IMG/VR virus record: IMGVR_UViG_3300032236_001613
Coordinates: 186,001 to 250,000 of that record
Length of the DNA stretch: 64,000 nt
Strand: one strand, 5' to 3'
In this document: piece after piece, positions 4,032 to 17,999 of the stretch
Layout: each line of letters begins with the position of its first letter
How positions within the stretch are numbered: position 1 is the stretch's first letter
Made by a program: the position numbers and the translations under genes
Notes under the pieces: model-generated
Database searches by the model: none
Seen by the model: only the letters and a program-made list of their open reading frames with translations
Told to the model about the DNA's origin: nothing

Positions 4032-4040
4032 GGAAATACA

Positions 4041-5087: not shown

Positions 5088-5133
5088 AATAAAAAAATCC
5101 AACAAATAAATAAAAGCCAAGAAGGTTTACACA

Positions 5134-6225
5134 ATGAATATAGTAATTCCTATGGTAGGTGCAGGGTCTCGATTTGCTAAAGAAGGTTTTCTCGAACCAA
5201 AACCTTTGATTGATGTCTTAGGTAAAACATTAATCGAGCATAGTATTGATAGCTTTAATGTTGCAGGTAAATTTATTTTTATTACTAGAGATTTTCATAA
5301 TCCCGAACATAATAAAAATTTATCTGAAATCTTAAAAAAGAAAAGACCTGAATCAAAAGAAATACGCTTAAAAAGATTAACAAGCGGAGCAGCCGAATCG
5401 GTATTAGCTGCAAAAGAATTGATTAATAACGATGAACCATTAATCATTTATAATTGCGATCAGCTTATTAATTGGAATCCAGAAGATTTTTTAAAGTTTA
5501 TCGTCAAGAAAAAACCCGATACGGCATTAGTTTTATATGACAGTACTGATCCAAAAAATAGTTTTGTCGAAATTATCCAAGGTAAAATTGTTAAATTTGT
5601 AGAAAAAGTGGTTATTTCAAATCATGCTTCTATAGGGTTTCATTATTGGGCACATGGTAGTGATTTTGTAAAAAGTGCAGAACAATTAATTGATAATTTT
5701 AGAGAAGAAGGCAAAAAAGAATGTTACATCAGCGGAACATTTGATTATTTAAAAGATAAAGTTATACTTCCTTATCATGTTCCGAATAGTGAATTCATTC
5801 CATTAGGAACTCCTGAGGATGTTGCAAAATATGTAGGTAAAGTTAAAGAGTTTACAAATGATAAACCTAAAAGCATCTTTATCGACATTGATGGTACAAT
5901 ATTAAAGCATATGCATACTATTTCTGACGTATATAAAGAAGAAGCTGTAGTATTGCCAGGAGTAATAGAAAAGTTAAATGAATGGGATAGTCAGGGATAT
6001 AAAATAATTCTCACAACTGCAAGAAAAGAGAGCACTAGAGAACACACTGAAGCACAACTTAGAAAATTCGGAATAGCATGGGATTATTTAATAATGGGCG
6101 TTGGAGGAAGAAGATATTTAATTAATGACAAATTGTCAGCAACTGATGCAGATCGTGCAGTTTCGATTAATGTTGTCACTAATGATGGGTTTAAAACTAC
6201 TAACTGGAAAAAACACGATCTATGA
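5134..6225 (+). CDS. Sugar nucleotidyltransferase fused to a C-terminal HAD phosphatase
   Basis: IVIPMVGAGSRF...PKPLI at the N-terminus; FIDIDGT, LTTAR, INDK at the C-terminus. Confidence 0.85.
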   Translation: MNIVIPMVGAGSRFAKEGFLEPKPLIDVLGKTLIEHSIDSFNVAGKFIFITRDFHNPEHNKNLSEILKKKRPESKEIRLKRLTSGAAESVLAAKELINNDEPLIIYNCDQLINWNPEDFLKFIVKKKPDTALVLYDSTDPKNSFVEIIQGKIVKFVEKVVISNHASIGFHYWAHGSDFVKSAEQLIDNFREEGKKECYISGTFDYLKDKVILPYHVPNSEFIPLGTPEDVAKYVGKVKEFTNDKPKSIFIDIDGTILKHMHTISDVYKEEAVVLPGVIEKLNEWDSQGYKIILTTARKESTREHTEAQLRKFGIAWDYLIMGVGGRRYLINDKLSATDADRAVSINVVTNDGFKTTNWKKHDL

Positions 6226-6545
6226 AAATAGTAAAATTAAAAGATATGAAAGACGGATGGTTTGTCGGCGGATTTCAACCTACAGCGTATTATACTAAGG
6301 ATGTCGAAGTAAATTATAGAATTCATCCTAAAGGGCAACTTTGGGATGTGCATTATCATAGCACTGTTACTGAAATTACTTTACTAATAAAAGGTAAAAT
6401 GATTATTCAAGGTAAAGAATTAACAGGCGGCGATATTTTTATTATCGAACCTTGGGAAATTACCGACCCAGTTTTTCTAGAAGACTGCGAAACTATTTGT
6501 GTTAAATTACCTAGTATAAATGATAAAAAAGTAGTTAAAAGTTAG
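6222..6545 (+). CDS. Cupin-domain protein
   Basis: GWFVGGF, HYH...E, GDIFIIEPWE; overlaps the upstream stop. Confidence 0.75.
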   Translation: MKIVKLKDMKDGWFVGGFQPTAYYTKDVEVNYRIHPKGQLWDVHYHSTVTEITLLIKGKMIIQGKELTGGDIFIIEPWEITDPVFLEDCETICVKLPSINDKKVVKS

Positions 6546-6550
6546 TAAAC

Positions 6551-7678
6551 ATGGATACCGTACAGAGAAACAATGATATTGTTTATAATAATAATGATTT
6601 AGAGCTCTTATATACATTTAAAAAATTCCCGGTATTTATGGGATGTACAGAACAAGAAATTAAAGACGATGTTTACTATGATTTAAATTTTTTTATCAGC
6701 CGTAAAAGCGGAATGATACAAATAAATCCAGTTGCACCGTTAGAACTAGTGTATCAGACAGAGCATCAATCCGGAGCAGTCGGAGCTGGTTGGTTTAAAC
6801 ATCATAACACATTTGCTAAATTTATAAAAGATTATAATCCTTGCAATGTATTTGAAATTGGCGGCGGACATGGATATTTAAGTAATGAATACTATACGTT
6901 AGATAGCAAAATAAATTGGACTATGATAGAACCTAATCCTTCTATTGTTGAATCTAATGCTACTGTTATTAAAGGATTTTTTAAAACTGTAGATCAGATA
7001 CCCAATCCAGTTGATGCAGTAGTTCATAGTCATTTCTTCGAGCATTTACATTATCCTGCTCAATTTGTTCAAATCTTGTCTTGTTTAAAGAACGGTATAA
7101 AAGTATTTTTTAGTATTCCTGATCTTAAAAAACAACTGGAACAAAAATATACTAATGTATTAAACTTCGAACATACATTTTATTGTACCGACGACTACGT
7201 CGAATGGATTTGGAATCACTATGGATTTAAACTATTAAAAAAGATTTATTTTGAAAACGGACATAGCATTTTTTATGCATTTGAAAAACAAGATACTACA
7301 AACACAGCCGAATATATTAATTCATATGAAACAAATAAAACTATATACTTAAACTATATTGATTATTACAAGAATTTGGTTAAAGATTTAAACAAGAGAA
7401 TTGAAGAAGAAACTAGCCCTGTTTTTATTTTCGGAGCCCATGCATCAACACAGTATCTACTTGCTTATGGCCTAAATGCTGATAAAATTAATGGAATTAT
7501 TGATAATAGTTCTCTTAAAGAAGGTAAACGTTTGTACGGAACTAAGTTTATAAGTCAAAAAACAAGTATATTAAAGGAAATTGAAAACCCTGTAGTAATA
7601 GTACGTGTAGGTATACAAAACGACGAAATTAAAAAAGATATATTAAAAAATATTAATTCAAATGTTACTTTTATTTAA
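6551..7678 (+). CDS. Class I SAM-dependent methyltransferase, paralog of 2904..4031
   Basis: VFEIGGGHG, VVHSHFFEH, FEH, IFGA, IIDNS, KRLYGT. Confidence 0.8.
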   Translation: MDTVQRNNDIVYNNNDLELLYTFKKFPVFMGCTEQEIKDDVYYDLNFFISRKSGMIQINPVAPLELVYQTEHQSGAVGAGWFKHHNTFAKFIKDYNPCNVFEIGGGHGYLSNEYYTLDSKINWTMIEPNPSIVESNATVIKGFFKTVDQIPNPVDAVVHSHFFEHLHYPAQFVQILSCLKNGIKVFFSIPDLKKQLEQKYTNVLNFEHTFYCTDDYVEWIWNHYGFKLLKKIYFENGHSIFYAFEKQDTTNTAEYINSYETNKTIYLNYIDYYKNLVKDLNKRIEEETSPVFIFGAHASTQYLLAYGLNADKINGIIDNSSLKEGKRLYGTKFISQKTSILKEIENPVVIVRVGIQNDEIKKDILKNINSNVTFI

Positions 7679-7681
7679 AGG

Positions 7682-7710
7682 TTGACAGCAGAGATAAATA
7701 AACGTATATT
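7682..7710 (+). promoter_or_regulatory. Sigma70-type promoter heading the tRNA array
   Basis: TTGACA-N17-TATATT. Confidence 0.8.
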
Positions 7711-7757
7711 AAATGACTACGATGCAATGCGTAGACGTTAATAAACAAGGAATAAAG

Positions 7758-7898
7758 ATGATTGCAACGACATTTACTACTCATAATAGTAAGACCTTTA
7801 AAGCAGGTTCTATACCCGCTTGGTCGTCAATTATGAATTATTCATATGATCGCGGTCAAGAAGGGAGTCCAAGGTCCGGAAGTGAGATGTTAGAGTAA
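7758..7898 (+). CDS. Putative attenuator leader peptide (46 aa; an in-frame ATG at 7722 is also possible)
   Basis: AAGGA SD before ATG 7758; stop codon lies in the antiterminator loop; 33 distinct codons in 46. Confidence 0.6.
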   Translation: MIATTFTTHNSKTFKAGSIPAWSSIMNYSYDRGQEGSPRSGSEMLE

Positions 7899-7935
7899 CA
7901 ACAAAACATCTAAAAACACTTAAAGGACCCTAGGA
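7868..7935 (+). promoter_or_regulatory. Antiterminator hairpin overlapping the terminator 5' arm
   Basis: GGTCC 7873-77/GGACC 7925-29, AAGTG 7880-84/CACTT 7917-21, AGATGTT 7885-91/AACATCT 7905-11. Confidence 0.65.
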
Positions 7936-7962
7936 TTAAGAACCCTGGGGTTTTTTGTTTTT
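7926..7962 (+). terminator. Intrinsic terminator (attenuator)
   Basis: GACCCTAGG/CCTGGGGTT stem followed by TTTTGTTTTT. Confidence 0.8.
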
Positions 7963-7963
7963 A

Positions 7964-8072
7964 GCAGTGTGAAAATAAGGTAACGAGGACCTTGCAGCGC
8001 ACTATAAACATGCTGTAAACGGGCGGAACCGGGGATCAAACCTGTGGCGAAAACGCAGGGAGTAAAATCCGG
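7964..8072 (+). ncRNA. Unidentified structured RNA
   Basis: Stems AAGGT/ACCTT, GCAGCG/TGCTGT, CCTGTG/CGCAGG, CCGG/CCGG; possible AGTGT/GCACT pseudoknot. Confidence 0.5.
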
Positions 8073-8122
8073 AATTTATATACTAAAGCATACCCAGTGC
8101 AGTGTTCTTTAGTATATAAATT
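8073..8122 (+). promoter_or_regulatory. Long hairpin, candidate RNase III processing site before the first tRNA
   Basis: Perfect 16-bp inverted repeat AATTTATATACTAAAG/CTTTAGTATATAAATT. Confidence 0.5.
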
Positions 8123-8126
8123 AATT

Positions 8127-8211
8127 GGGTAAGCGCCGGAGTGAGAGAGCCGGATTTGACTGTAAATCAAACGTCCCGACTGAGTAGGTGCGAATCCTAC
8201 CTTACCCACCA
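8127..8211 (+). tRNA. tRNA-Tyr(GTA)
   Basis: TTTGA-CTGTAAA-TCAAA, long variable arm, T-loop TGCGAAT, CCA. Confidence 0.9.
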
Positions 8212-8217
8212 AATAAT

Positions 8218-8321
8218 GCGGCAGTAAGTGCGTAATGGGCTAATGGTGGCCAATCCTGTCTACATGGATCAAATGTAACGGTTGCACCTTGATGTAGGTT
8301 CGAATCCTATCTGCTGCACCA
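8218..8321 (+). ncRNA. Atypical 104-nt tRNA-like gene, possible CTA anticodon
   Basis: Acceptor GCGGCAG/CTGCTGC-A-CCA and canonical T arm; irregular D and anticodon region. Confidence 0.6.
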
Positions 8322-8407
8322 CATTGCAACGGTTCTACCATCGTTAATCGGTAGCGCATACTTGGATGCGAGAAAAGACCTTTTACGTCGACCAAGACTA
8401 ATTTTAT

Positions 8408-8485
8408 GCTCCCATAGTTTAGAAGGGCCCAGAACATCCGATTCTCAGTCGGAAAACGCAGGTTCGAATCCTGCCGGGAGCGCCA
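8408..8485 (+). tRNA. tRNA-Glu(CTC)
   Basis: TCCGA-TTCTCAG-TCGGA, CCA. Confidence 0.9.
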
Positions 8486-8529
8486 TTTTACTTAATAAAT
8501 ATTACAAATTTTAAAATAAAGGGTTACTA

Positions 8530-9135
8530 ATGAATATCTCAGATTACAAACAATTTATAAAAGATACAGGCACTTTAATACAAATTGGTGCTTTTGATGG
8601 TGTTGCTTGCGAAGACTCAGGGTTTAGAGAATTAGTACTTTATAAAAATTATAATGCTCATTTGGTTGAACCAGTTATAGATTTTTTTCAGGCGTTACAA
8701 AAAAACTATAGTAATGCTACGAGTAATGTTCGATTTTATAATCAAGCAATTTATACAGAAAATGGAGAATTACCTTTTTTTAAAAATTACACTGACCCAT
8801 TACAATGTACTTTTATAAGAGAAAATGTAGCTGAATATCATGGGCAAACAATACTAGTACAGTCACGAACTTTTGATACTTTTTTACAAGAAAATAACAT
8901 TAATGAAATCGAAGGATTATTTATTGATGCAGAAGGTGCCGAAGATACTATACTCCAACAGCTTTTTGAAAAAACGAATATCAGACCTAATATAATTCGT
9001 TATGAATGGCCACATTTGCCTGACCCTGTAAACACAATCAGATACATTATGTCTTATGGCTATACTGTTTCTCCCTGCATCTATTCAGGCGGTCGTGTTG
9101 ATAACATTTGTATTAAAAACGACCTTTTAGTTTAA
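8530..9135 (+). CDS. FkbM-family methyltransferase
   Basis: IQIGAFDG, LVEP, LFIDAEGAE, IRYE. Confidence 0.8.
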   Translation: MNISDYKQFIKDTGTLIQIGAFDGVACEDSGFRELVLYKNYNAHLVEPVIDFFQALQKNYSNATSNVRFYNQAIYTENGELPFFKNYTDPLQCTFIRENVAEYHGQTILVQSRTFDTFLQENNINEIEGLFIDAEGAEDTILQQLFEKTNIRPNIIRYEWPHLPDPVNTIRYIMSYGYTVSPCIYSGGRVDNICIKNDLLV

Positions 9136-9139
9136 TCTC

Positions 9140-9214
9140 GGTTCCATAGTATATCGGTTAATACATCGGCTTGTCACGTCGAAGTGAGGGGTTCGATTCC
9201 CCTTGGAACCGCCA
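9140..9214 (+). tRNA. tRNA-Asp(GTC)
   Basis: TCGGC-TTGTCAC-GTCGA, G73, CCA. Confidence 0.92.
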
Positions 9215-9219
9215 AATAT

Positions 9220-9295
9220 GCCATCTTAGCTCAGTTGGTAGAGCAGCAGACTGAAAATCTGCGTGTCCCCGGTTCAATTCCGGGAGATGGTACCA
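9220..9295 (+). tRNA. tRNA-Phe(GAA)
   Basis: GCAGA-CTGAAAA-TCTGC, CCA. Confidence 0.95.
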
Positions 9296-9299
9296 GTTA

Positions 9300-10020
9300 T
9301 TATGCCCATCTCCCGTGATCAAAGCTATTGTCAGGGTTTTTAAATTTTCTTAAAGATGATTCTATTCCGGTTACCGGCCACGATATGTGATTTTTATATA
9401 AATGATATATCAACATGTTTTGTGGAGTAAAACACACTCCTTCGGTTGTATATTGATCAATATAATTAAAAACAGACGAATATATGGACATGACATCGCT
9501 ATTGCCTATAGCAAACTGATCGTTTATCCCTGCTCCTTGTCTTTCGGTATCTGGTGTTATTATCATTGGTGTGTTTATACGGTCAAGGTATTCTTTAACT
9601 TTATTTAAAAATATGTAATTATTTAAGCATAAATCTGGCCTTGCTCTAATCACTAAATCATATTTGCCAAACATAGCTTCGTATTTTTGTCTAATATGAC
9701 CAACACGTTGTACGCCATTAAACATATACCAAGCATGAGAGGCCCATGTATGAGTACTATGAGGTCCGCCTAAAATATATGGTTTAGTTTCATCAAATAT
9801 AGGTTCGGGTACAATATCAAAATGAACTACATAATTATTTTTTGGTAAATTATTAACCAATTTAACATAAAACTCATGTTTGTTATTATTCCAACTAGGA
9901 GGAACCCCTTTATCAATGGAATTGTTAGAATTCCAAACATGTATAAACCAATCTAATTGATCATAGATCAAAATCCTTAGTAAACCTCGGTCGACCTGAT
10001 AATTCAATTGCTACTTTCAT
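9300..10020 (-). pseudogene. Frameshifted putative glycosyltransferase-like gene
   Basis: ATG 10020 gives MKVAIELSGRPRFTKDFDL*; the body (YDLVIRARPDL, INDQFAIG) is in another frame. Confidence 0.6.
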
Positions 10021-10045
10021 GCGACTATTTATTGTTAGAGTTTAT

Positions 10046-10122
10046 GGGGCCATAACTCAATAGGCTAGAGTAACTGGCTTTTAACCAGTAAGTTGTGAGT
10101 TCGAGCCTCACTGGCCCTACCA
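10046..10122 (+). tRNA. tRNA-Lys(TTT)
   Basis: ACTGG-CTTTTAA-CCAGT, CCA. Confidence 0.93.
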
Positions 10123-10129
10123 TTTCAAT

Positions 10130-10206
10130 GCCTCCGTAACTCAATGGATCAGAGTGCTTGGCTTCGAACCAAGAAGTTGGGAGTTCGAATCTCTCCGGGG
10201 GCGCCA
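10130..10206 (+). tRNA. tRNA-Arg(TCG)
   Basis: CTTGG-CTTCGAA-CCAAG, CCA. Confidence 0.93.
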
Positions 10207-10261
10207 TATTACGTGATAAGTAAACAGCAGACAGTTTACAGAAACACAAAGGAGATTTTTA

Positions 10262-10843
10262 ATGAATAAGTTTATTGTTTCGATTATTGCCGGACTTGCT
10301 TTTGCGAATCTTGCAGTAGCCGCGGATTATGCTGGTGTTGATTATCAAGATAAGCAGAAGGTCGACGTTGCTGAACAACACGATGTATTTGGTGCTTATA
10401 TTGGACATAAGTTTTCTGACACAGGATTCTCTGTTGAAGGACGCTTAGAAAATGAAATTGTGCATGATCCTAGTAAGCATGAAGGGCTCGTTCAGGTAAA
10501 AGGAACTTATAATGTACCTGCAGCAATTCTAGAAGTTTATCCTTATGTCAGCGCCACAGTTGGCTATAAGAGCGAAGCAACTAGTAATTTTGATTTTTAT
10601 GTTTTAGAAACGGGATTAAAGTATACCCAACTACCTAACGTAGAACTACGTTATGGACTACGTCTACGTACTCCGTTTAACGAAAGTTCGGTAGGCGAAG
10701 GCAACCATTACCGTACAGTAGAAAATAGCATCAACGCCGTTTATAAACTAGACAGTCATAATGGCGTTACTTTAAAATATGCACGTGAGCATGGTGATAG
10801 CAATTATCACACTTACGGTGTTGGTCTAGTACACTCCTTCTAA
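10262..10843 (+). CDS. Outer-membrane beta-barrel (porin-like) protein
   Basis: Signal peptide ending AVA, alternating beta-strand pattern, C-terminal YGVGLVHSF. Confidence 0.7.
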   Translation: MNKFIVSIIAGLAFANLAVAADYAGVDYQDKQKVDVAEQHDVFGAYIGHKFSDTGFSVEGRLENEIVHDPSKHEGLVQVKGTYNVPAAILEVYPYVSATVGYKSEATSNFDFYVLETGLKYTQLPNVELRYGLRLRTPFNESSVGEGNHYRTVENSINAVYKLDSHNGVTLKYAREHGDSNYHTYGVGLVHSF

Positions 10844-10847
10844 TCAT

Positions 10848-11297
10848 ATGGCAATAATTGCAGCCTTATTATGTCTGCTAGGCTGGTTTTTGCCATTAAC
10901 AGATTATCTAACTCCTAAATCAGGAGTAGGTTATTGGATGGGTATAGTAGGAGCGTCCATGATGCTCCTACTTTTAACTTATAGTCTGCGAAAACGTTAT
11001 AAATTCTTAGATTGGTCACCCCCACTTAGTAAGTGGTTTAATGCACACATATTTTTAGGTCTATATGGGCCTTTATTAATCTTATATCATTGCGGCTATC
11101 ATTTAGGTGCTTTTAATAGTAATATGGCTTTATGGTCGATGATTATAGTTGCTATTAGCGGAGTTATAGGTAGATTTTTATATAATCGTCCTCAATTTAA
11201 AAAAGCATTCGCTATTTGGCATGTGGCACATTTGCCTTTTGTTTTTATGTTAGCTGCAGCAGCAGTTATACATATACTTGCAGTAAACATATATTAA
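10848..11297 (+). CDS. His-containing multi-pass membrane protein (possible heme b ligands)
   Basis: Hydrophobic helices with WFNAHIFLG, LYH, WHVAHLP, IH. Confidence 0.55.
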   Translation: MAIIAALLCLLGWFLPLTDYLTPKSGVGYWMGIVGASMMLLLLTYSLRKRYKFLDWSPPLSKWFNAHIFLGLYGPLLILYHCGYHLGAFNSNMALWSMIIVAISGVIGRFLYNRPQFKKAFAIWHVAHLPFVFMLAAAAVIHILAVNIY

Positions 11298-11305
11298 AAA
11301 CGTAT

Positions 11306-11381
11306 GGTGGCTATAGTGTAGAGGTTCGCACACTAGGTTGTGGCCCTGGTAGTAAGGGTTCAATTCCCTTTAGTCACCCCA
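11306..11381 (+). tRNA. tRNA-His(GTG)
   Basis: G-1:C73, CTAGG-TTGTGGC-CCTGG, CCA. Confidence 0.92.
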
Positions 11382-11447
11382 AATTATTTTTATAATTAGT
11401 CTAGGAATATAGATAATTTTCTCTTATAATTATCTATATAATTTTTC

Positions 11448-11537
11448 GGAAGTGTGGCAGAGTCCGGTTTATTGCAACAGTCTTGAAAACTGTCGAGTTT
11501 AATCGCTCCGTAGGTTCGAATCCTACTACTTCCGCCA
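11448..11537 (+). tRNA. tRNA-Ser(TGA)
   Basis: ACAGT-CTTGAAA-ACTGT, long variable arm, G73, CCA. Confidence 0.95.
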
Positions 11538-11541
11538 AATT

Positions 11542-11599
11542 TAGGATGCTTCCAGCAAATAAAAAACTTTTCTTGAAAAAAAGCCAAAACAGCATCCTG
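11542..11599 (+). ncRNA. Anticodon-display RNA copy 1 (TGA stem-loop)
   Basis: AGGATGCT/AGCATCCT closing stem, CAGCAA, internal CTTTT-CTTGAAA-AAAAG. Confidence 0.7.
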
Positions 11600-11609
11600 T
11601 TTAATTTTA

Positions 11610-11704
11610 CCTCGATAGCACAGGTGTGCGGCTAGGTCTTATAAACCTGGGAGAGTTGCCAGATTAGCGACAACGGGAAGGATCGTTACCTTCATCGAGG
11701 ACCA
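11610..11704 (+). tRNA. Non-canonical tRNA with TAT anticodon and long variable arm
   Basis: CCTCGAT/ATCGAGG-A-CCA; 6-bp stem CTAGGT-CTTATAA-ACCTGG; T-loop ATCGTTA. Confidence 0.75.
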
Positions 11705-11712
11705 AATTTTAG

Positions 11713-11741
11713 TTGACTAATTGGTAAATGCGTGTTAAAGT
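11713..11741 (+). promoter_or_regulatory. Sigma70-type promoter with extended -10
   Basis: TTGACT-N17-(TGt)TAAAGT. Confidence 0.6.
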
Positions 11742-11751
11742 ATACGCATAC

Positions 11752-11780
11752 GCTAAGAAATTAGCAACGCTCTTTAATAA
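11752..11780 (+). promoter_or_regulatory. rrn-type boxB/boxA antitermination site
   Basis: GCTAA-GAAA-TTAGC hairpin followed by CGCTCTTTAATAA. Confidence 0.7.
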
Positions 11781-11795
11781 ATGAAAATAGTTTAT

Positions 11796-11871
11796 GGTCC
11801 CATCATCTAGAGGCCTAGGATATTGCCCTTTCACGGCAAGTACACGGGTTCAAATCCCGTTGGGACTACCA
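11796..11871 (+). tRNA. tRNA-Glu(TTC)
   Basis: TTGCC-CTTTCAC-GGCAA, CCA. Confidence 0.93.
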
Positions 11872-11908
11872 TACTTTTTAACTAAATATCTAGCTACGGA
11901 GAAATACT

Positions 11909-12364
11909 ATGAGCTTTCTAGACGTTTTCAAGAAAGAAAAAGACAAGCTAGTTGAAGAAGTTACTAAAGTCGAATCTACTGTTGTCGAAGAAGTAAAGAA
12001 AGTAGAAGCAGTGGCTGAACGAGCTGTTGCTGCTACCGAAGCAGTAGTTAAAGAAGTTGTAGTAGATTTTGAAAAGATTTTAACAGAAGCCGAGCAGGCA
12101 GCAGAAAGAACTCTACGCGATGTAGAGTTAGCTCGCCAGTTATACGAAAAAGCACTGGCTAGAGCAAATCTAGCAGCTAATAGAGCTAGAGAAGCTGCTG
12201 AACAAGCAGCAGCAAAAGCCCAAGAAGAAGCTGAAAGAGCCTTGTTGAGAGCTGAACGTGCTGCTAAGTTAGTGATTGGTATTTCAGGATCGGCGCCAGC
12301 TCCGGTTATTGCGCCTCCACCAATCGCTCCTGCTCCACCCCCTACAAGTAATACTACTCAATAA
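11909..12364 (+). CDS. Ala/Glu-rich coiled-coil protein with Pro-rich tail
   Basis: Composition; GGAG SD. Confidence 0.6.
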   Translation: MSFLDVFKKEKDKLVEEVTKVESTVVEEVKKVEAVAERAVAATEAVVKEVVVDFEKILTEAEQAAERTLRDVELARQLYEKALARANLAANRAREAAEQAAAKAQEEAERALLRAERAAKLVIGISGSAPAPVIAPPPIAPAPPPTSNTTQ

Positions 12365-12366
12365 TT

Positions 12367-12442
12367 AGTAGTGTAGCATAGTGGCTAATGCAGCACCTTC
12401 ATACGGTGTTTACCATCGGTTCGAGTCCGATCACTACTACCA
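12367..12442 (+). tRNA. tRNA-CAT (elongator Met or Ile2)
   Basis: GCACC-TTCATAC-GGTGT, paired 1:72, CCA. Confidence 0.88.
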
Positions 12443-12446
12443 GTTT

Positions 12447-12561
12447 TAGGATACCTACAGCAACATAAATTACTCATGCTAAGAGAGAGGTCGTTGGTTC
12501 AAGTCCAACCTAGTCTTAGGACTAGTAGCTCAGTTGGTAGAGCACTAAAATGTGTATCCTG
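12447..12561 (+). ncRNA. Anticodon-display RNA copy 2 containing a circularly permuted tRNA (GCT loop)
   Basis: AGGATAC/GTATCCT closing stem; order is anticodon loop, variable loop, T arm, loop-closed acceptor stem, D arm. Confidence 0.8.
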
Positions 12562-12570
12562 TTTTATTCG

Positions 12571-12648
12571 GCACCGGTGGCAGAGTGGCCCAATGCAAGA
12601 GTCTGCAAAACTCTAAAGTCGTCAGTTCGAATCTGACCCGGTGCTCCA
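12571..12648 (+). tRNA. tRNA-Cys(GCA)
   Basis: AGAGT-CTGCAAA-ACTCT, U73, CCA. Confidence 0.93.
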
Positions 12649-12697
12649 ATATACTTGTATAATAGATAACAAACATATATAATATATGAAATTATAC

Positions 12698-12773
12698 GGC
12701 CTCGTAGCCTAGTGGATCAGGCAACAGCCTTCTAAGCTGTCTTACACAGGTTCGAATCCTGTCGAGGTCGCCA
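12698..12773 (+). tRNA. tRNA-Arg(TCT)
   Basis: ACAGC-CTTCTAA-GCTGT, CCA. Confidence 0.93.
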
Positions 12774-12824
12774 AATTAATTAGTTTGACATCTTAATAAA
12801 GATAAGTAATAATATATCAACAAC

Positions 12825-12898
12825 GCGGAATTGGCATATGGGTTGTGCTCCAGCCTTCCAAGCTGGCTAAACGAGTTCGAGTCTCGTATTCCGCTCCA
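12825..12898 (+). tRNA. tRNA-Gly(TCC)
   Basis: CCAGC-CTTCCAA-GCTGG, U73, CCA; TTGACA at 12785 upstream. Confidence 0.93.
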
Positions 12899-12915
12899 AC
12901 TTTTAAGAGGCTCTA

Positions 12916-13134
12916 ATGAATAATCTCGGTGAATTAAGAGATTACGCTGTTGCTCGAGGATATAAAATCAAAGAGTTTAACGGATATGCACTACATATTG
13001 GGCGTGATACTTATACTATGTTAGCTGGAGAAATTTATCTCAATAAGATTAAAACTCCTACTAAAGAAGTTTTAAAGAAATTTACAGAAAAGTCTGCTGC
13101 AAAAAAAACTGCAGCAACAGCAAAGAAAAAATAG
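12916..13134 (+). CDS. Hypothetical basic protein
   Basis: ORF with GAGG SD. Confidence 0.55.
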   Translation: MNNLGELRDYAVARGYKIKEFNGYALHIGRDTYTMLAGEIYLNKIKTPTKEVLKKFTEKSAAKKTAATAKKK

Positions 13135-13140
13135 TTTTGT

Positions 13141-13221
13141 GCCCTAATGGTGAAATTGGTAGACACGCAAGATTTAGGTTCTTGTCTTCGGGTGGGGGTT
13201 CGAGTCCCTCTTAGGGCACCA
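13141..13221 (+). tRNA. tRNA-Leu(TAG)
   Basis: CAAGA-TTTAGGT-TCTTG, short variable arm, A73, CCA. Confidence 0.92.
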
Positions 13222-13228
13222 ATAGTTT

Positions 13229-13289
13229 TAGGATGCCTACAGCAAATTTAAAAATCAAAATGTCAATTTGAAAACAAATGCGCATCCTG
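13229..13289 (+). ncRNA. Anticodon-display RNA copy 3 (GTC stem-loop)
   Basis: AGGATGC/GCATCCT closing stem, CTACAGCAA, internal TCAAA-ATGTCAA-TTTGA. Confidence 0.7.
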
Positions 13290-13298
13290 TTTAAATAT

Positions 13299-13372
13299 GC
13301 CGGTGTAGTATAATGATAGTGCGACGGTCTCCAAAACCGTTAGTGGGAGTTTGATTCTCTCCACCGGTGCCA
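13299..13372 (+). tRNA. tRNA-Trp(CCA)
   Basis: ACGGT-CTCCAAA-ACCGT, CCA. Confidence 0.92.
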
Positions 13373-13384
13373 AATCGAGGACTT

Positions 13385-13699
13385 ATGACAAAAAAATTTA
13401 CATTTAATGATTTACAACCTAGAGTTGAAATGCTAATCGATGCTCTAGAAAATCGTGGCGCTTGTGCTAGCGGCTTACCATATGCTCCGGGCGTTAAAGC
13501 AGTTGCTGAAAACTATAAGTCAATGTTAGATTTTATAAGAAATAAAACAATTAACAAAGACGATCTCATCAACAGTTTATCAACAGCTAAAGCACTTGTA
13601 TTAGAACGAGCAGGTGGTAATCAAATTGATAGAATACGTAAAATTCTAGATGCTCTTGACTCCTATATGATGAGAGAGTATAATAAACAGAACAGTTGA
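13385..13699 (+). CDS. Hypothetical protein
   Basis: GAGG SD before ATG 13385. Confidence 0.55.
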   Translation: MTKKFTFNDLQPRVEMLIDALENRGACASGLPYAPGVKAVAENYKSMLDFIRNKTINKDDLINSLSTAKALVLERAGGNQIDRIRKILDALDSYMMREYNKQNS

Positions 13700-13721
13700 C
13701 CCTTCGTCTAGCGGTAGGACA
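13697..13721 (+). pseudogene. 5' remnant of a tRNA-Gln-like gene
   Basis: TGACCCT-TC-GTCT-AGCGGT-AGGAC-A: acceptor 5' strand plus Gln-type D arm, no 3' half. Confidence 0.65.
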
Positions 13722-13735
13722 AATATAAATACTAT

Positions 13736-14278
13736 ATGCTTAGTAAAAATATTAGTTCAGAGACAATCGAAAAATTAATTGATTCAGGTTTAAAAACCTC
13801 AGAAATTGCATCTAAGCTCGGTATCTCTACTGCAACAGTTTCTTATTGGAAAAAGAAACTCGGAAAAGAACTTAGTAATATCAAACATGATTGGAAAAAA
13901 ATTCAAGAAGCCCACAACAATGGGTCTACTTATTCTCAATTATACAAAGAGTTTGGTGTTACTAAAAGATCATTACAGAAAGCTAGAGATCGAGGAGATT
14001 TCAAGGTTAGACAGCGTAAAAAATTGTCAAAAGATGACGCTAAAATTAGAAAAAGAATTATATGCAGAGAAGCGTGGATGCGGTATTATAGTAGAAAAAA
14101 ATATCAAACTCCGGCTGATGAAGATATTAAAAAATTACAAGAATTTTATGCTAATTGCCCGGTTGGTTATGAAGTAGATCACATCATACCTATAAGTAAA
14201 GGCGGATTACATACATTGTCGAATCTTCAATACTTAACTATTAAAGAGAATAGACAAAAAGGTAATAAGATATTATAA
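13736..14278 (+). CDS. HTH-HNH homing endonuclease
   Basis: N-terminal SEIASKLGISTATVSYW; YEVDHIIPISKGGLHTLSNLQYLTIKENRQK. Confidence 0.88.
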   Translation: MLSKNISSETIEKLIDSGLKTSEIASKLGISTATVSYWKKKLGKELSNIKHDWKKIQEAHNNGSTYSQLYKEFGVTKRSLQKARDRGDFKVRQRKKLSKDDAKIRKRIICREAWMRYYSRKKYQTPADEDIKKLQEFYANCPVGYEVDHIIPISKGGLHTLSNLQYLTIKENRQKGNKIL

Positions 14279-14289
14279 TTTAACACTAT

Positions 14290-14363
14290 TGGGGAATCTT
14301 CTAACGGCAGGAAGGCGGACTTTGACTCCGCTAATCTAGGTTCGAATCCTAGTTCCCCAGCCA
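14290..14363 (+). tRNA. tRNA-Gln(TTG)
   Basis: GCGGA-CTTTGAC-TCCGC, U1:A72, CCA. Confidence 0.93.
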
Positions 14364-14369
14364 ATTTTT

Positions 14370-14443
14370 GCCCGATTAGCTCAAAAGTAGAGCGCACGAC
14401 TGATAATCGTAAGACAAAGGAGCGTTACCTTTATTGGGCACCA
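14370..14443 (+). tRNA. tRNA-Ile(GAT) with atypical D and T loops
   Basis: CACGA-CTGATAA-TCGTA; T-loop AGCGTTA; CCA. Confidence 0.85.
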
Positions 14444-14459
14444 TATAAATAAAGACAAT

Positions 14460-14535
14460 TGGAGTGTAGCTCAGCGGCAGTAGCGTTCGCCTGTTAAGCG
14501 AATGGTCGTAGGTTCGATCCCTACCACTCCAGCCA
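14460..14535 (+). tRNA. tRNA-Asn(GTT)
   Basis: TTCGC-CTGTTAA-GCGAA, CCA. Confidence 0.92.
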
Positions 14536-14543
14536 AATTTTAG

Positions 14544-14572
14544 TTGACCATTTTCGAAATGTTCAATATAAT
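14544..14572 (+). promoter_or_regulatory. Sigma70-type promoter
   Basis: TTGACC-N17-TATAAT. Confidence 0.7.
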
Positions 14573-14601
14573 ATATTCAAGTTAGTAAATAGTTTCGCGT
14601 T

Positions 14602-14675
14602 GGGGGATTGATGTAGTGATAGCCTGGGACCCTTGCACGGTCTTCGCGAGAGTTTGATTCTCTCATCCTCCACCA
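14602..14675 (+). tRNA. tRNA-Ala(TGC)
   Basis: G3:U70, GGACC-CTTGCAC-GGTCT, CCA. Confidence 0.9.
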
Positions 14676-14683
14676 AAGTTTGA

Positions 14684-14757
14684 TGCAGGGTAGTAGAACG
14701 GAACTACGCTAGGCTCATAACCTAGAGAACTTGGTTCGACTCCAAGCTCTGCTTCCA
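14684..14757 (+). tRNA. tRNA-Met(CAT), initiator-like
   Basis: 1:72 mismatch, CTAGG-CTCATAA-CCTAG, CCA. Confidence 0.85.
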
Positions 14758-14766
14758 GTTTGAAAC

Positions 14767-14854
14767 GGATGGTTGCCTGAGCGGTTAAAGGAGCGGGTTG
14801 CTAACCCGTCGCGGTGAAAACTGCGCATAGGTTCGAATCCTATACCATCCGCCA
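14767..14854 (+). tRNA. tRNA-Ser(GCT)
   Basis: GCGGG-TTGCTAA-CCCGT, long variable arm, CCA. Confidence 0.94.
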
Positions 14855-14876
14855 ATTTGTTATATAGAGGAATAAA

Positions 14877-15092
14877 ATGCAAGAGTATAAGCCGACCGGT
14901 AGTTATCGTATGTCACGTCAAGCCAAGCAGATGTTATCTAGGATCCAGGATCCTATTGAGAGAACTGAAGCAAAACGTTTAATTATTCAAAGTGAGTTGC
15001 ATCTTCAGTTGACTCCTAAGCGTAATCCGCTTGATAAGGATCGCACAACTAAAAATAGTCGCAATAATAAAGACGACTCGTTAGAAGAGTAA
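14877..15092 (+). CDS. Hypothetical protein
   Basis: GAGGA SD. Confidence 0.55.
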   Translation: MQEYKPTGSYRMSRQAKQMLSRIQDPIERTEAKRLIIQSELHLQLTPKRNPLDKDRTTKNSRNNKDDSLEE

Positions 15093-15102
15093 ATAAAGTT
15101 AG

Positions 15103-15178
15103 GCCTTCTAAGCATTGCTGGCGATGCACCGGATTTGTAACCCGGGGATAGTCTGTTCGATTCAGACAGAAGGCACCA
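15103..15178 (+). tRNA. tRNA-Thr(TGT)
   Basis: GCCTTCT/AGAAGGC acceptor, loop TTTGTAA, CCA. Confidence 0.85.
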
Positions 15179-15182
15179 GTTT

Positions 15183-15286
15183 AGACGGACCTGTAACCAT
15201 ATTCCGTCTCCGCCGGAGCGAAAACAGGATGGGCTGCTGCCGCGGGGTTTGACTGTTTCCTGACACACAAATAACAGTCATGTGTT
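15183..15286 (+). ncRNA. Pseudoknotted structured RNA between tRNAs
   Basis: AGACGGA/TCCGTCT with CCTGT/ACAGG; GACTGTT/AACAGTC with ACACA/TGTGT. Confidence 0.6.
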
Positions 15287-15289
15287 TAT

Positions 15290-15364
15290 GCCCGGTTAGC
15301 TCAGGGGTAGAGCGTCTGGTTTACATCCAGAATGTCGGCGGTTCGAAACCGTCACCGGGTACCA
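15290..15364 (+). tRNA. tRNA-Val(TAC)
   Basis: TCTGG-TTTACAT-CCAGA, CCA. Confidence 0.94.
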
Positions 15365-15378
15365 GTTTAGTAAGGTCA

Positions 15379-15454
15379 CGGGGTGTAGCTCAGTCTGGTT
15401 TAGAGCGTCCGCTTTGGGAGCGGAAGGTCCAAAGTTCGAATCTTTGTACCCCGA
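15379..15454 (+). tRNA. tRNA-Pro(TGG), no encoded CCA
   Basis: TCCGC-TTTGGGA-GCGGA, C1:G72, followed by AAAA. Confidence 0.9.
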
Positions 15455-15469
15455 AAAATTAAATTTACA

Positions 15470-15901
15470 ATGAAAATAAAAATTACAGATCAAGATCCTG
15501 ACCGTCATAATCACATAGAATATCCTATGGAGATTGGAGGTCAGGCTTTTGCACCTGTAAAAATCGAAAAAGAAAAAGATCTTATGCTAGCTGTCGCACA
15601 ACTTAGCGCACAGCAAGAATATGATCGCATCATGGAATCTGTTTCTATATTACAACGGCAAGCACAAGCACTACAAAGAAGAATGCATTTAACAGAGATG
15701 GTACATGCTGCTAAGTTTAGTTTTGTGCCAATTCCGGGTAAAAGTTATTGGTTAGTCGAAGATACTAAAAAATCTCAAATTATTTTAACCCCAATGGGTC
15801 CATCAGATTGGAGTTGTTTGGCGCCTGAAGAATATAAGTATGTTGCATATGTACGTTGTTTAGGCGATCAAACCTGGCAAGAAATTATAGAGCCCGATTA
15901 G
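15470..15901 (+). CDS. Conserved hypothetical protein (DUF2452-like)
   Basis: YPMEIG..AFAP, AKFSFVPIPGKSYWL, MGPSDW, DQTW. Confidence 0.6.
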   Translation: MKIKITDQDPDRHNHIEYPMEIGGQAFAPVKIEKEKDLMLAVAQLSAQQEYDRIMESVSILQRQAQALQRRMHLTEMVHAAKFSFVPIPGKSYWLVEDTKKSQIILTPMGPSDWSCLAPEEYKYVAYVRCLGDQTWQEIIEPD

Positions 15902-15968
15902 CTCAGTTGGTAGTAGCAACTGATTAGTAATCAGTAGGTCGGCGGTTCGAATCCGTCATCGGGCACCA
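15892..15968 (+). tRNA. tRNA-Thr(AGT)
   Basis: ACTGA-TTAGTAA-TCAGT, CCA; overlaps the upstream CDS end. Confidence 0.9.
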
Positions 15969-16004
15969 TATAAGAAAGATATATACATTTAAGGAGACCA
16001 TATA

Positions 16005-16250
16005 ATGAGTAAAGGAAGTAGAACTAGACCATTGTCGGTCACTAGAAAAACGTTCGATAGTAATTGGGATCGAATTTTTGGAAAAAAGGAATATGATATG
16101 CAAATTAAAGTAAAAGAAGGATCCTTAGGCAGTTGTCCTTGCGGACGCAGTCCGATTAATCGCTGTGTTGGATGGCACAATCTCAACGAAGAGCAGTTAG
16201 CCAAAGCAAAGGCCGATTATGCAGCTAAAGAAGCAAAGAAAACTGCATGA
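16005..16250 (+). CDS. CDGSH-like iron-sulfur domain protein
   Basis: CPCGRSPINRCVGWH. Confidence 0.65.
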   Translation: MSKGSRTRPLSVTRKTFDSNWDRIFGKKEYDMQIKVKEGSLGSCPCGRSPINRCVGWHNLNEEQLAKAKADYAAKEAKKTA

Positions 16251-16651
16251 TAGAAAAAGTTGTAGTTAACGGCACGTTTGATATACTGCACTTAGGGCAT
16301 ATTAGACTTTTAGAATATGCTCGTGAGCTTGGATGGTATTTACTTGTCTTAATTGATTCAGATCGTAGAGTACAAGAACTTAAAGGCCCTACACGGCCGG
16401 TTAACAATCAAGAAGAAAGAGCCGAAATGCTTCGTGCTATTAAGTATGTTGACGAAGTGCAAATTTTTGACAGTGATGATGAATTAAGAAACCTTATTAA
16501 AGAATATCAGCCGGATTTTATGGTTAAAGGTAGTGATTACAGAAATCGTCCTATTATAGGTAGCGAATATTGTAAGGAAATTAAGTTTTATGAGTATATG
16601 GAAGGCTATTCGACCACAAAAAAAATATCAAGTATTATTGATAGGCGATAG
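16247..16651 (+). CDS. ADP-heptose synthase adenylyltransferase domain (RfaE/HldE domain II)
   Basis: NGTFDILHLGH, LKGPTRP, VKGSDY, YSTT. Confidence 0.9.
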   Translation: MIEKVVVNGTFDILHLGHIRLLEYARELGWYLLVLIDSDRRVQELKGPTRPVNNQEERAEMLRAIKYVDEVQIFDSDDELRNLIKEYQPDFMVKGSDYRNRPIIGSEYCKEIKFYEYMEGYSTTKKISSIIDRR

Positions 16652-17384
16652 TTGTACTGACGTTTATCAATACGGAACTGTGGATAGAATTAGTCCAGAA
16701 GCACCTGTACCTATTTTTAAACATAGTCATACAGAAACTAGGCCAGGAATGGCAGCAAACGTACAGTTGAATCTTGAATCGTTTGGAATCGAAGTTACAG
16801 CATTGCTAGGGCCTGGATCAGTAAAGACTAGGCTAGTTGATCTTCGTAGTCGGCAACATGTTCTTAGAATCGATGATGATGCTAACGCCACTCCTATGTT
16901 ATTCGATTCTAAACTTGATCTAACACACTATCATGCGGTAGTGTTTAGTGATTACAATAAAGGATGGGTTAGTTACGAATTAGTTGAAGTAGTACGACAA
17001 AAGTTCGGTGGACCAATTTTTATTGATACTAAAAAACAAGATCTAGCAAAATTTTGGGACTGTTATGTTAAAGTTAACGAAACTGAGTACAATAACAGAT
17101 GGTCTATCAATAATAAATTAATTGTTACATTAGGTAATCGAGGTGCAGTTTATAAAGAACTTGGTCGCAAAGAAGTAGAATTTCCACCAGACACAGTCGA
17201 GGTAGTAGATGTATGTGGTGCTGGAGACACATTTTTAGCAGCCATAGTTGCAGAATACTTAAATAGTAGAGATATTAATAGTGCAATAAAGTTTGCTAAC
17301 CATGCTAGTGCTATAAGTGTACAGCATAGCGGAGTTTATGCATTAACTCGAGAAGATATTAAGAAGATTAAAAAGCGGGTATGA
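16590..17384 (+). CDS. Heptose-7-phosphate kinase domain (RfaE/HldE domain I, PfkB family)
   Basis: RISPEAPVP, SDYNKG, DVCGAGDTF. Confidence 0.9.
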   Translation: MSIWKAIRPQKKYQVLLIGDSCTDVYQYGTVDRISPEAPVPIFKHSHTETRPGMAANVQLNLESFGIEVTALLGPGSVKTRLVDLRSRQHVLRIDDDANATPMLFDSKLDLTHYHAVVFSDYNKGWVSYELVEVVRQKFGGPIFIDTKKQDLAKFWDCYVKVNETEYNNRWSINNKLIVTLGNRGAVYKELGRKEVEFPPDTVEVVDVCGAGDTFLAAIVAEYLNSRDINSAIKFANHASAISVQHSGVYALTREDIKKIKKRV

Positions 17385-17397
17385 TGTAATCGAACCT
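17375..17397 (+). pseudogene. 5' remnant of a tRNA-Gly-like gene
   Basis: GCGGGTA-TG-ATGT-AATCG-AACCT with no 3' half. Confidence 0.5.
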
Positions 17398-17431
17398 TTG
17401 ACTTATATAAATAAGTATATAGGAGTACGAT

Positions 17432-17914
17432 ATGAAATATTGCCCGAAGTGTAATAATGAACATAATAAACCTGGAATGTTTTGCTCAAGATCATGTGCA
17501 AATAGTCGTGTTTGGTCAGAAGAGACCAATTTAAAAAGATCAATAACATCAAAGGGTAATTCCCCGTGGAATAAAGGTATATCCACCGGAATTAACGAAG
17601 AAAGAAATAAAGTTATACGATTAGTTCGATTGGAAAAAAATAGAAATAAATTTTTAAACGGGTTGATAACCGAAAGATCGGCAATAAGGAAACATCTTAC
17701 AAGAGAACATGGTTATTTCTGTTCTATTTGTTCTATTTCAGAATGGCAAGGACAAAAAATTACATTACAAGTAGATCATATAGATGGAAACGCAGGAAAC
17801 AATTTACCTACAAATCTAAGATTAATTTGTCCGAATTGTCATAGTCAAACTAAAACATTTGGAGCAAGAAATAAAGGTTCAGGAAGAGCATCTAGAGGTC
17901 TTCCGTTAAGTTAA
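17432..17914 (+). CDS. HNH homing endonuclease with N-terminal zinc finger
   Basis: CPKC..FCSRSC, PWNKG, LQVDHIDGNAGNNLPTNLRLICPNCH. Confidence 0.9.
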   Translation: MKYCPKCNNEHNKPGMFCSRSCANSRVWSEETNLKRSITSKGNSPWNKGISTGINEERNKVIRLVRLEKNRNKFLNGLITERSAIRKHLTREHGYFCSICSISEWQGQKITLQVDHIDGNAGNNLPTNLRLICPNCHSQTKTFGARNKGSGRASRGLPLS

Positions 17915-17924
17915 ATAATATATC

Positions 17925-17999
17925 GCGGGATTAATTCAGTGGTAGAATGCAACTTTGCCAAAGTTGATGTCACCGGTTCGAGCCCGGTATCCCGCTCCA
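17925..17999 (+). tRNA. tRNA-Gly(GCC)
   Basis: CAACT-TTGCCAA-AGTTG, U73, CCA. Confidence 0.94.

Follow-up and report, generated by a model that had tools for sequence, protein, structure and literature searches.

Introduction

AUA is the one sense codon whose reading in bacteria normally depends on an essential anticodon modification, lysidine, and because the anticodon is also the main identity mark for isoleucyl-tRNA synthetase (IleRS), tRNAs carrying an unmodified UAU anticodon are rare. Minor tRNA-Ile(UAU) species are found in TilS-lacking bacteria (Mycoplasma mobile, and also Lactobacillus and Bifidobacterium), where they are canonical 76-nt cloverleaves that read AUA without lysidine (PMC3575796). 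Ordinary IleRS rejects U34: the Escherichia coli enzyme prefers the lysidine-modified LAU form over UAU 360-fold in kcat/Km, a Trp that stacks on base 34 (Trp905) is responsible, species with tilS keep that Trp, and in M. mobile it is the synthetase that has adapted (Arg865) (PMC3575796).

Long extra arms have been combined with UAU anticodons in two other settings. Allo-tRNAs, found in metagenomes and phages, are non-canonical cloverleaves defined by 8/4 or 9/3 acceptor/T stems, with a long extra arm, tRNA-Ser/Sec-like features and 35 different anticodons, UAU being among the common ones, and are charged by SerRS (PMC5389517, PMC7609411). Nematode nev-tRNA-Ile(UAU) carries an extra stem-loop between the anticodon and T arms and is charged with Leu (PMC3333845). 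Class II tRNAs (Leu, Ser and Tyr) likewise place an extra stem-loop there, with a short 3-5-nt loop, a 1-2-nt 3' linker and no sequence conservation, and their variable arms are recognised by shape. Outside tRNAs, hairpins that imitate an anticodon arm can recruit the cognate synthetase from a non-canonical position, as in the E. coli thrS operator and the tyrosine-accepting tRNA-like structure of BMV (PMC9976931; bioRxiv 10.1101/2023.07.08.548219), which are an mRNA operator and a viral genome end, respectively.

Here we examine a UAU-anticodon tRNA gene in a 64,000-nt stretch of DNA (hereafter the window) that spans bases 186,001-250,000 of the virus record IMGVR_UViG_3300032236_001613. We find that it is one member of a widespread, apparently undescribed family of 90-95-nt tRNAs that carry, next to a normal UAU anticodon arm, a second, strictly conserved arm resembling the GAU anticodon arm of ordinary tRNA-Ile. 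Full-text literature searches, which did not cover subscription-only papers, returned no description of this architecture.

A non-canonical tRNA in a jumbo-phage tRNA array

The record is 328,068 bp long (37% G+C, estimated 92% complete), so a jumbo phage, and the gene lies between tRNA-Ser(UGA) and tRNA-Glu(UUC) in an array of 27 tRNA genes, 25 of which are called by ARAGORN and two by Rfam alone (Table 1). A first-pass annotation made from the sequence alone had described a single nucleotide between the acceptor and D stems, a 4-nt D loop, a 6-bp anticodon stem, a long variable arm and the T loop ATCGTTA, and each of these details is confirmed in the sequence. One correction applies, in that the long variable arm is not a class II variable arm but a 5-bp stem with a 7-nt loop, flanked by 4 and 5 unpaired nucleotides.

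Table 1. Coordinates of the five-arm tRNA and of related features in the window
Feature	Position	Strand	Description	Supporting observations
Whole gene	11610-11704	+	Five-arm tRNA, 95 nt including the encoded CCA	ARAGORN tRNA-Ile(tat); minimum-energy fold; family covariance model R1, 85.6 bits, E 2e-17
Acceptor stem, 5' strand	11610-11616	+	7 bp, pairs with 11694-11700; C1-G72	Fold; all 7 pairs covary in the family
D arm	11618-11629	+	4-bp stem (11618-11621 with 11626-11629), 4-nt loop AGGU; only A11617 separates it from the acceptor stem; followed by two G	Fold; all 4 pairs have double changes in the family
Decoding arm	11632-11650	+	6-bp stem, loop CUUAUAA, anticodon UAU at 11640-11642	ARAGORN; fold
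Second arm, GAU anticodon-arm mimic	11655-11671	+	5-bp stem (11655-11659 with 11667-11671), 7-nt loop CAGAUUA, GAU at 11662-11664; preceded by four unpaired nucleotides	Fold
Linker	11672-11676	+	5 nt (AACGG), at the position of a canonical 5-nt variable loop	Fold; family alignment
T arm	11677-11693	+	5-bp stem, loop AUCGUUA (A54...U58 in place of T54...A58)	Fold; 3 of 5 stem pairs covary in the family and the other 2 never vary
3' end	11694-11704	+	Acceptor stem 3' strand (11694-11700), discriminator A73 (11701), encoded CCA (11702-11704)	A73 in 65 of 65 relatives; ACCA encoded in 55 of 65
Ordinary tRNA-Ile(GAU)	14370-14443	+	Four-arm tRNA with the sister T loop AGCGUUA	Found by Rfam only, 54.5 bits; fold
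tRNA-Tyr(GUA)	8127-8211		Member of the array	Found by Rfam only
tRNA array	8127-17999	+	27 genes	25 ARAGORN calls plus 2 Rfam-only calls

The RNAfold minimum-energy structure equals the centroid and is exactly this cloverleaf (-31.6 kcal/mol, 49% of the ensemble, z = -2.4), with 4 of 200 shuffled sequences folding as well. In contrast, the Rfam tRNA model (RF00005) does not report the gene at the gathering score or even at E <= 10 on positions 11540-11790, although 26 other tRNAs in the window are hit, so that the gene is non-canonical by this criterion while retaining the 7-bp acceptor stem, the 5-bp T stem, a 7-nt anticodon loop with U33 and a purine at position 37, and a discriminator base followed by CCA. 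At the loose threshold the locus returned only chance-level Rfam hits (Dicty class I RNA on the upstream hairpin, L10 leader and snR41) and no tRNA or tRNA-Sec model. Megablast and blastn searches against isolated phages (INPHARED) found no relative of the array or of the tRNA, and a promoter and terminator scan around the gene gave nothing above the shuffle expectation.

A widespread five-arm family

That the structure is more than a chance fold is shown by its relatives rather than by the single sequence. As the phage's ordinary tRNA-Ile(GAU) has nearly the same odd T arm and a similar 3' end, we first scanned viral contigs for the T-arm motif and found it to be common in ordinary phage tRNAs, most often Ile(GAU); the T loop is therefore not special to the five-arm gene. 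A second scan, which asked only for the UAU loop, a long gap and the T-loop motif, returned 98 loci, about 70 of which (33 distinct sequences) have the same five-arm plan, with ARAGORN recognising only 13 of the loci. A third scan, in which the first anticodon was left free, added nine more distinct members, all with UAU, whereas the other long tRNAs it caught are ordinary tRNA-Tyr or tRNA-Ser. Finally, the same pattern in one-genome-per-species bacterial contigs identified 23 loci, mostly in Verrucomicrobiota (Opitutaceae) tRNA arrays or Sulfitobacter/Rhodobacterales contigs. In total, the family comprises at least 111 loci and 65 distinct sequences (87 viral contig loci, 23 bacterial genome loci and the window's own), although the scans required the unusual T loop and the census is thus biased towards it.

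Alignment of the 65 sequences to a family covariance model (R1) shows that all five helices covary: 88.4% of cells are paired against 36-47% when partners are slid, 25 of 27 pairs change on both sides, and 535 cells are compensatory against 120-178 in the slid controls. Because this alignment was fitted to the model, we also note that an unfitted MAFFT/RNAalifold run had already given 15 of 17 pairs with compensatory changes. Standard tRNA finders miss much of the family, as Rfam misses the gene entirely and ARAGORN calls only 29 of the 65 distinct members, which leaves phage tRNA censuses and inferences on AUA decoding incomplete. When either arm was deleted in silico, ARAGORN called 4 of the UAU-arm deletions, a figure to be read against its 29 calls among the 65 intact members.

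The 7/5 split of the acceptor branch, together with an anticodon that is always UAU and an invariant A73, sets the family apart from allo-tRNAs, and the suggestion in the first-pass annotation of an allo-tRNA link fails on the defining 8/4 or 9/3 stems. It is also distinct from class II tRNAs and nev-tRNAs, in that the extra arm has a 7-nt loop with conserved sequence and a 5-nt 3' linker, and the codon evidence described below points to Ile, not Leu.

Two loops with distinct conservation

The first loop reads C/U-U-U-A-U-A-A, and U33, the UAU anticodon and A37 are present in 65 of 65 members, including the nine found without any anticodon constraint. The second arm is a 3-5-bp stem with a 7-nt loop, in which position 1 is C or U, position 2 is A in 57 of 65 and U in only 1, position 3 is G in 65 of 65, position 4 is A in 65 of 65, position 5 is U in 63 of 65 and C in 2, position 6 can be any base, and position 7 is A in 57 of 65. 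Two of the three scans, namely the second viral scan and the bacterial scan, did not ask for GAU, so this conservation is not built in, and the stems around the loop change freely with compensation, so the invariance reflects selection and not recent common descent. We considered pairing of the second loop with the T loop or the anticodon loop and rejected it, as GAU is constant while the T loop alternates between AUC and AGC and the neighbouring bases vary, leaving no covariation.

Within the second stem, the pair equivalent to 29-41 is C-G in 62 of 65 members, while its neighbour flips among G-C, A-U and C-G. At the same position, C-G occurs in 51% of 91 ordinary phage tRNA-Ile(GAU), in 11% of 2,269 other tRNAs and in 25% of the family's UAU arms. 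The identity determinants of E. coli tRNA-Ile comprise A73, G34-A35-U36, t6A37, A38, C29-G41, C4-G69 and U12-A23 (PMC9976931); of these, the second arm and the acceptor end of the family carry A73 in 65 of 65, the G, A and U in 63-65 of 65, A38 in 57 of 65 and C29-G41 in 62 of 65, whereas A37 in the second loop is found in 10 of 65, C4-G69 in 39 of 65 and U12-A23 in 12 of 65.

The second arm occupies the place of a tRNA-Ile(GAU) anticodon arm

In the window, R1 hits only the five-arm gene and the ordinary tRNA-Ile(GAU) (35.5 bits), and for the latter it deletes the 19 positions of the UAU arm and lays the GAU anticodon arm on the family's second arm. A second model (R2), built from 39 ordinary phage tRNA-Ile(GAU), similarly aligns its anticodon arm to the second arm and treats the UAU arm as the insertion, both for the window tRNA and for a Verrucomicrobial member (locus L337). 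These alignments carry two caveats, namely that R2 behaves in practice as a generic tRNA model, with Val, Phe, Asn and other tRNAs outscoring the five-arm gene, and that the cross-hit of R1 leans partly on the shared T loop. In the window tRNA, the GAU further sits 15 nt before the GG of the T stem, which is the canonical distance from position 36 to position 52, and the linker that follows matches a normal variable loop. The arm first described as variable thus occupies the place of the original anticodon arm of a tRNA-Ile(GAU) and is a conserved mimic, and probably a descendant, of it, whereas the UAU arm is the addition; each arm keeps one canonical junction, the UAU arm on the D-stem side and the GAU arm on the T-arm side. 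Ordinary phage tRNA-Ile(GAU) with the T loop A[U/G]CGUUA, such as that of the window, shares the T arm, the A73-CCA end, the 3' linker and a GAU arm with C-G at 29-41, but has four arms, a 7-8-nt D loop, U33 and A37 in the GAU loop and no UAU arm.

The canonical position and spacing of the GAU arm could also mean that it is the real anticodon arm, in a tRNA-Ile(GAU) that reads AUC/AUU and carries an inserted hairpin of other or no function. We consider this very unlikely, as the GAU loop has A, C or G at position 33 in 64 of 65 members and a non-purine at position 37 in most, the inserted loop is a flawless and invariant anticodon loop, and several arrays, including that of the window, already contain an ordinary tRNA-Ile(GAU).

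AUA usage and genomic context

In 212 long open reading frames of the phage, ATA accounts for 26.6% of Ile codons (18.7 per 1000) and is as frequent as ATG. Its usage is uneven, with 5 of 66 Ile codons in the DNA polymerase and 3 of 53 in a ClpA-like ATPase, against 34 of 80 in a putative Ig-domain (He_PIG) protein and 18 of 37 in a subtilase, which is the usual pattern for codons served by phage tRNAs. Of the 111 loci, 100 lie among other tRNA genes, and many small phage contigs carry just this tRNA and tRNA-Arg(UCU), the classic rare-codon pair.

To determine what ATA means in these genes, we compared 20 orthologous genes codon by codon with a related phage (locus L418, 60-94% protein identity). 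Of 87 aligned ATA codons, 46 are kept and 41 change, 19 to ATT or ATC, 7 to Val codons, 4 to Leu codons and 2 to Met codons, no Ser codon is among the ten commonest partners, and the profile matches that of ATT itself and is unlike that of TTA. ATA is therefore under selection as an isoleucine codon, which argues against reassignment to Ser, Leu or Tyr, and no alternative genetic code was invoked. Two earlier attempts had been less informative, as the ClpA-like gene has only 3 ATA codons and a subtilase alignment at about 48% identity showed mostly I/L/V at ATA positions, with Leu frequent in homologues, but was too noisy.

These data bear on the possibility of a deliberately mischarged tRNA, in which the long extra arm would recruit LeuRS, SerRS or TyrRS so that AUA is partly read as another amino acid. 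Such a reading draws on the extra arm itself, on A73, which tRNA-Leu and tRNA-Tyr share, on the allo-tRNA(UAU) and nev-tRNA(UAU) precedents and on the Leu residues of subtilase homologues, but the substitution pattern, the sequence-conserved 7-nt loop, the 7/5 stems and the constant UAU all speak against it, and we regard it as very unlikely. The interpretation offered by the first-pass annotation, either a TilS-independent AUA decoder or a tRNA charged with another amino acid, is accordingly supported in part: the former fits the evidence, whereas the latter is not supported, and neither the GAU mimicry of the extra arm nor the existence of a large family had been recognised.

A role outside translation, as a tRNA-like decoy or sponge (for a host anticodon nuclease, another tRNA-targeting defence or IleRS itself) or as a primer, likewise appears very unlikely. 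Phage tRNAs are both targets and counter-measures in defence, and the copy in Sulfitobacter undariae lies next to a reverse transcriptase gene; however, full tRNA features are conserved, the genes sit in ordinary tRNA arrays and are paired with Arg(UCU), the phage is ATA-rich, and no reverse transcriptase was found at 12 other family loci checked, four of them in Sulfitobacter or Rhodobacterales, so that we treat the adjacency as coincidence.

A model for separate identity and decoding arms

We propose that the gene encodes a functional phage tRNA that reads the isoleucine codon AUA with an unmodified-C-free UAU anticodon, so that it would need no lysidine synthetase (TilS), and that its family arose from an ordinary phage tRNA-Ile(GAU) by gain of a new stem-loop between the D arm and the old anticodon arm. 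In this view, the new arm carries the working anticodon loop (C/U32, U33, UAU, A37, A38), whereas the old arm keeps what an IleRS reads (G34-A35-U36, A38 and the C29-G41 pair, together with A73) and has lost what a ribosome needs, namely U33 and a purine at position 37. Host IleRS enzymes of the common Trp type, which charge UAU tRNAs poorly, would dock on the retained GAU arm and load isoleucine, and on the ribosome the GAU arm would then be carried like a long variable arm while the UAU arm decodes AUA, supplying the ATA-rich phage genes when the host's own AUA decoder is scarce. The phage itself has no tilS or IleRS gene. Whereas the fold, the family with its covariation and conservation pattern, the genomic context and the behaviour of ATA as an Ile codon are direct results of the analysis, the expression of the tRNA, its charging with isoleucine, the recognition of the second arm by IleRS and the geometry of that recognition are inferences from sequence. 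We are highly confident that this is a real, functional tRNA family and consider it likely that it reads AUA as Ile, but hold the role of the second arm as an IleRS handle to be only as likely as not, and the model as a whole to be slightly better supported than not.

Several features weaken the proposed handle. The second loop mostly lacks A37, and t6A37 is a strong positive determinant for E. coli IleRS (PMC3575796), while the acceptor and D-stem determinants C4-G69 and U12-A23 are not conserved in the family. Furthermore, IleRS is a class I enzyme that approaches tRNA from the D-arm side, so that a variable-arm-like projection would point away from it, and either an alternative conformer with the GAU arm stacked under the D stem or an unusual docking mode has to be assumed. 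Canonical 75-nt tRNA-Ile(UAU) genes also occur in phages (locus L097), so an extra arm is not obligatory for a phage UAU tRNA. IleRS could thus read the UAU arm directly, as canonical-length tRNA-Ile(UAU) genes in phages and in bacteria such as M. mobile (PMC3575796) suggest, with the conserved second arm serving as a fold or stability element or as a binding site for a modification enzyme, a processing enzyme or a phage factor. We find this alternative unlikely, albeit less so than the others, because the invariant bases are exactly the three IleRS anticodon determinants at the anticodon positions of a 7-nt loop, the Ile-type C-G pair sits at the position equivalent to 29-41, IleRS of the carriers examined has the Trp that disfavours U34, and no other reader of G-A-U in a hairpin loop is known among the tRNA modification enzymes Tgt, TilS, TsaD, MiaA and TrmD.

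If the model holds, phages and mobile tRNA arrays would keep a decoding-dead GAU arm as a docking site for host IleRS next to a new UAU arm, in a natural tRNA class that physically separates the identity anticodon from the decoding anticodon and bypasses both lysidine formation and the synthetase's rejection of U34. A UAU tRNA that reads AUA without lysidine is already known from M. mobile, where the synthetase is adapted, whereas here the tRNA appears to carry the adaptation; and whereas the thrS operator and the BMV structure lie outside tRNAs, the mimic would here sit inside a decoding tRNA alongside a different working anticodon. Such a widespread uncoupling of identity from decoding within one tRNA would represent a new principle of tRNA identity, a new explanation of how phages supply a rare-codon tRNA that many hosts could charge, and a ready-made scaffold for codon reassignment in synthetic biology, since the decoding arm could be changed while the synthetase handle is kept.

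Bacterial carriers

One of the bacterial loci belongs to a cultured strain, Sulfitobacter undariae DSM 102234 (NZ_JACIEI010000024.1, locus L416:3358-3448, minus strand), which is held in a public culture collection and makes the question directly testable. All five carrier bacteria checked have tilS, so that the tRNA is an accessory and not a replacement. The IleRS of two carrier genomes, S. undariae and Nibricoccus, keeps the R-C-W motif, and the motif of the Sulfitobacter enzyme aligns to the Staphylococcus aureus enzyme. Within carrier lineages the tRNA is patchy, being found in 4 of 101 genomes sampled from the family of Nibricoccus and in 10 of 101 species sampled from the genus of Sulfitobacter, which fits a mobile accessory gene.

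Tool coverage and variant loops among phage tRNAs

Within the tRNA array, ARAGORN misses two real genes, Tyr(GUA) and Ile(GAU), that are found by Rfam, whereas Rfam in turn misses the five-arm tRNA; neither tool alone gives the phage's tRNA set. The scan of viral contigs for the T-arm motif further showed that a T loop A[U/G]CGUUA, with A54...U58 in place of T54...A58 as if the reverse-Hoogsteen pair were swapped, recurs in many ordinary phage tRNAs, where it is most frequent in Ile(GAU) and also occurs in Lys, Met, Phe, Asn, Gln and Ser. The same odd T loop is found in a recurrent 85-86-nt phage tRNA-Tyr(GUA) type with an unusual region where the D arm should be (viral contigs L224, L226, L239, L252 and L253). 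In addition, several otherwise ordinary tRNA-Ile(GAU) genes in our alignment of such phage tRNAs carry C33 instead of the near-universal U33 in the anticodon loop. The phage itself has three tRNAs with a CAU anticodon, one of which has a mismatched 1-72 pair, like an initiator; a lysidine-dependent tRNA-Ile2 among them, which would make AUA decoding redundant, remains possible.

Genomic surroundings of the five-arm tRNA

A hairpin with a long A/U-rich loop lies between tRNA-Ser and the five-arm tRNA; it gives only a sub-threshold Rfam match to an unrelated family and could be a processing or termination signal. HNH endonuclease genes are interspersed in the array, and a cluster of methyltransferase (Methyltransf_23, FkbM) and nucleotidyltransferase/HAD genes lies just upstream of it and overlaps its first genes. 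The phage also encodes an S8 subtilase, a family-B DNA polymerase and a ClpA/ClpC-like double-AAA ATPase, the latter with 74-94% identical homologues, several of them on contigs of roughly 280-350 kb (a clade of related jumbo phages), and ATA usage differs sharply between these genes.

In bacterial genomes, the Sulfitobacter undariae DSM 102234 copy stands alone, divergent from an RVT_1 reverse transcriptase gene that is followed by a protein of more than 1000 aa with HYR and Ig-like repeats, possibly a diversity-generating retroelement, although this adjacency is not seen in 12 other family loci checked. In a Nibricoccus MAG, two copies of the five-arm tRNA lie 36 kb apart on a 5.16-Mb contig, each with a weaker match to the family covariance model R1, of ordinary tRNA length (74 nt), 1-3 kb downstream, which suggests a duplicated tRNA array or the two ends of an integrated element.

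Coordinates of the additional features (L, contig loci; G, genomes)
Feature	Location	Coordinates
tRNAs with T loop A[U/G]CGUUA (examples)	L094; L010; L006; window	9750-9823; 8612-8685; 8239-8313; 14370-14443
tRNA-Ile(GAU) genes with C33	L225; L263; L265; L289; L290; L011	2749-2822; 1094-1167; 7324-7397; 4179-4252; 5201-5274; 3062-3135
Tyr(GUA) and Ile(GAU) genes missed by ARAGORN	window	8127-8211 and 14370-14443
85-86-nt tRNA-Tyr(GUA) type	L224, L226, L239, L252, L253	
tRNAs with a CAU anticodon	phage, G000:C1	84131-84208 (-), 198367-198442, 200684-200757 (mismatched 1-72 pair)
Hairpin with A/U-rich loop	window	11544-11599
HNH endonuclease genes	window	13736-14278 and 17432-17914
Methyltransferase and nucleotidyltransferase/HAD cluster	window	2904-9135
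ClpA/ClpC-like ATPase, S8 subtilase and family-B DNA polymerase genes	window	54171-56444, 42126-43772, 61227-63929
RVT_1 gene and following repeat protein	L416, S. undariae DSM 102234	3951-4949 (+) and 4922-7999 (+)
Two five-arm tRNA copies	G001:C1, Nibricoccus MAG	2391258-2391347 and 2427760-2427849
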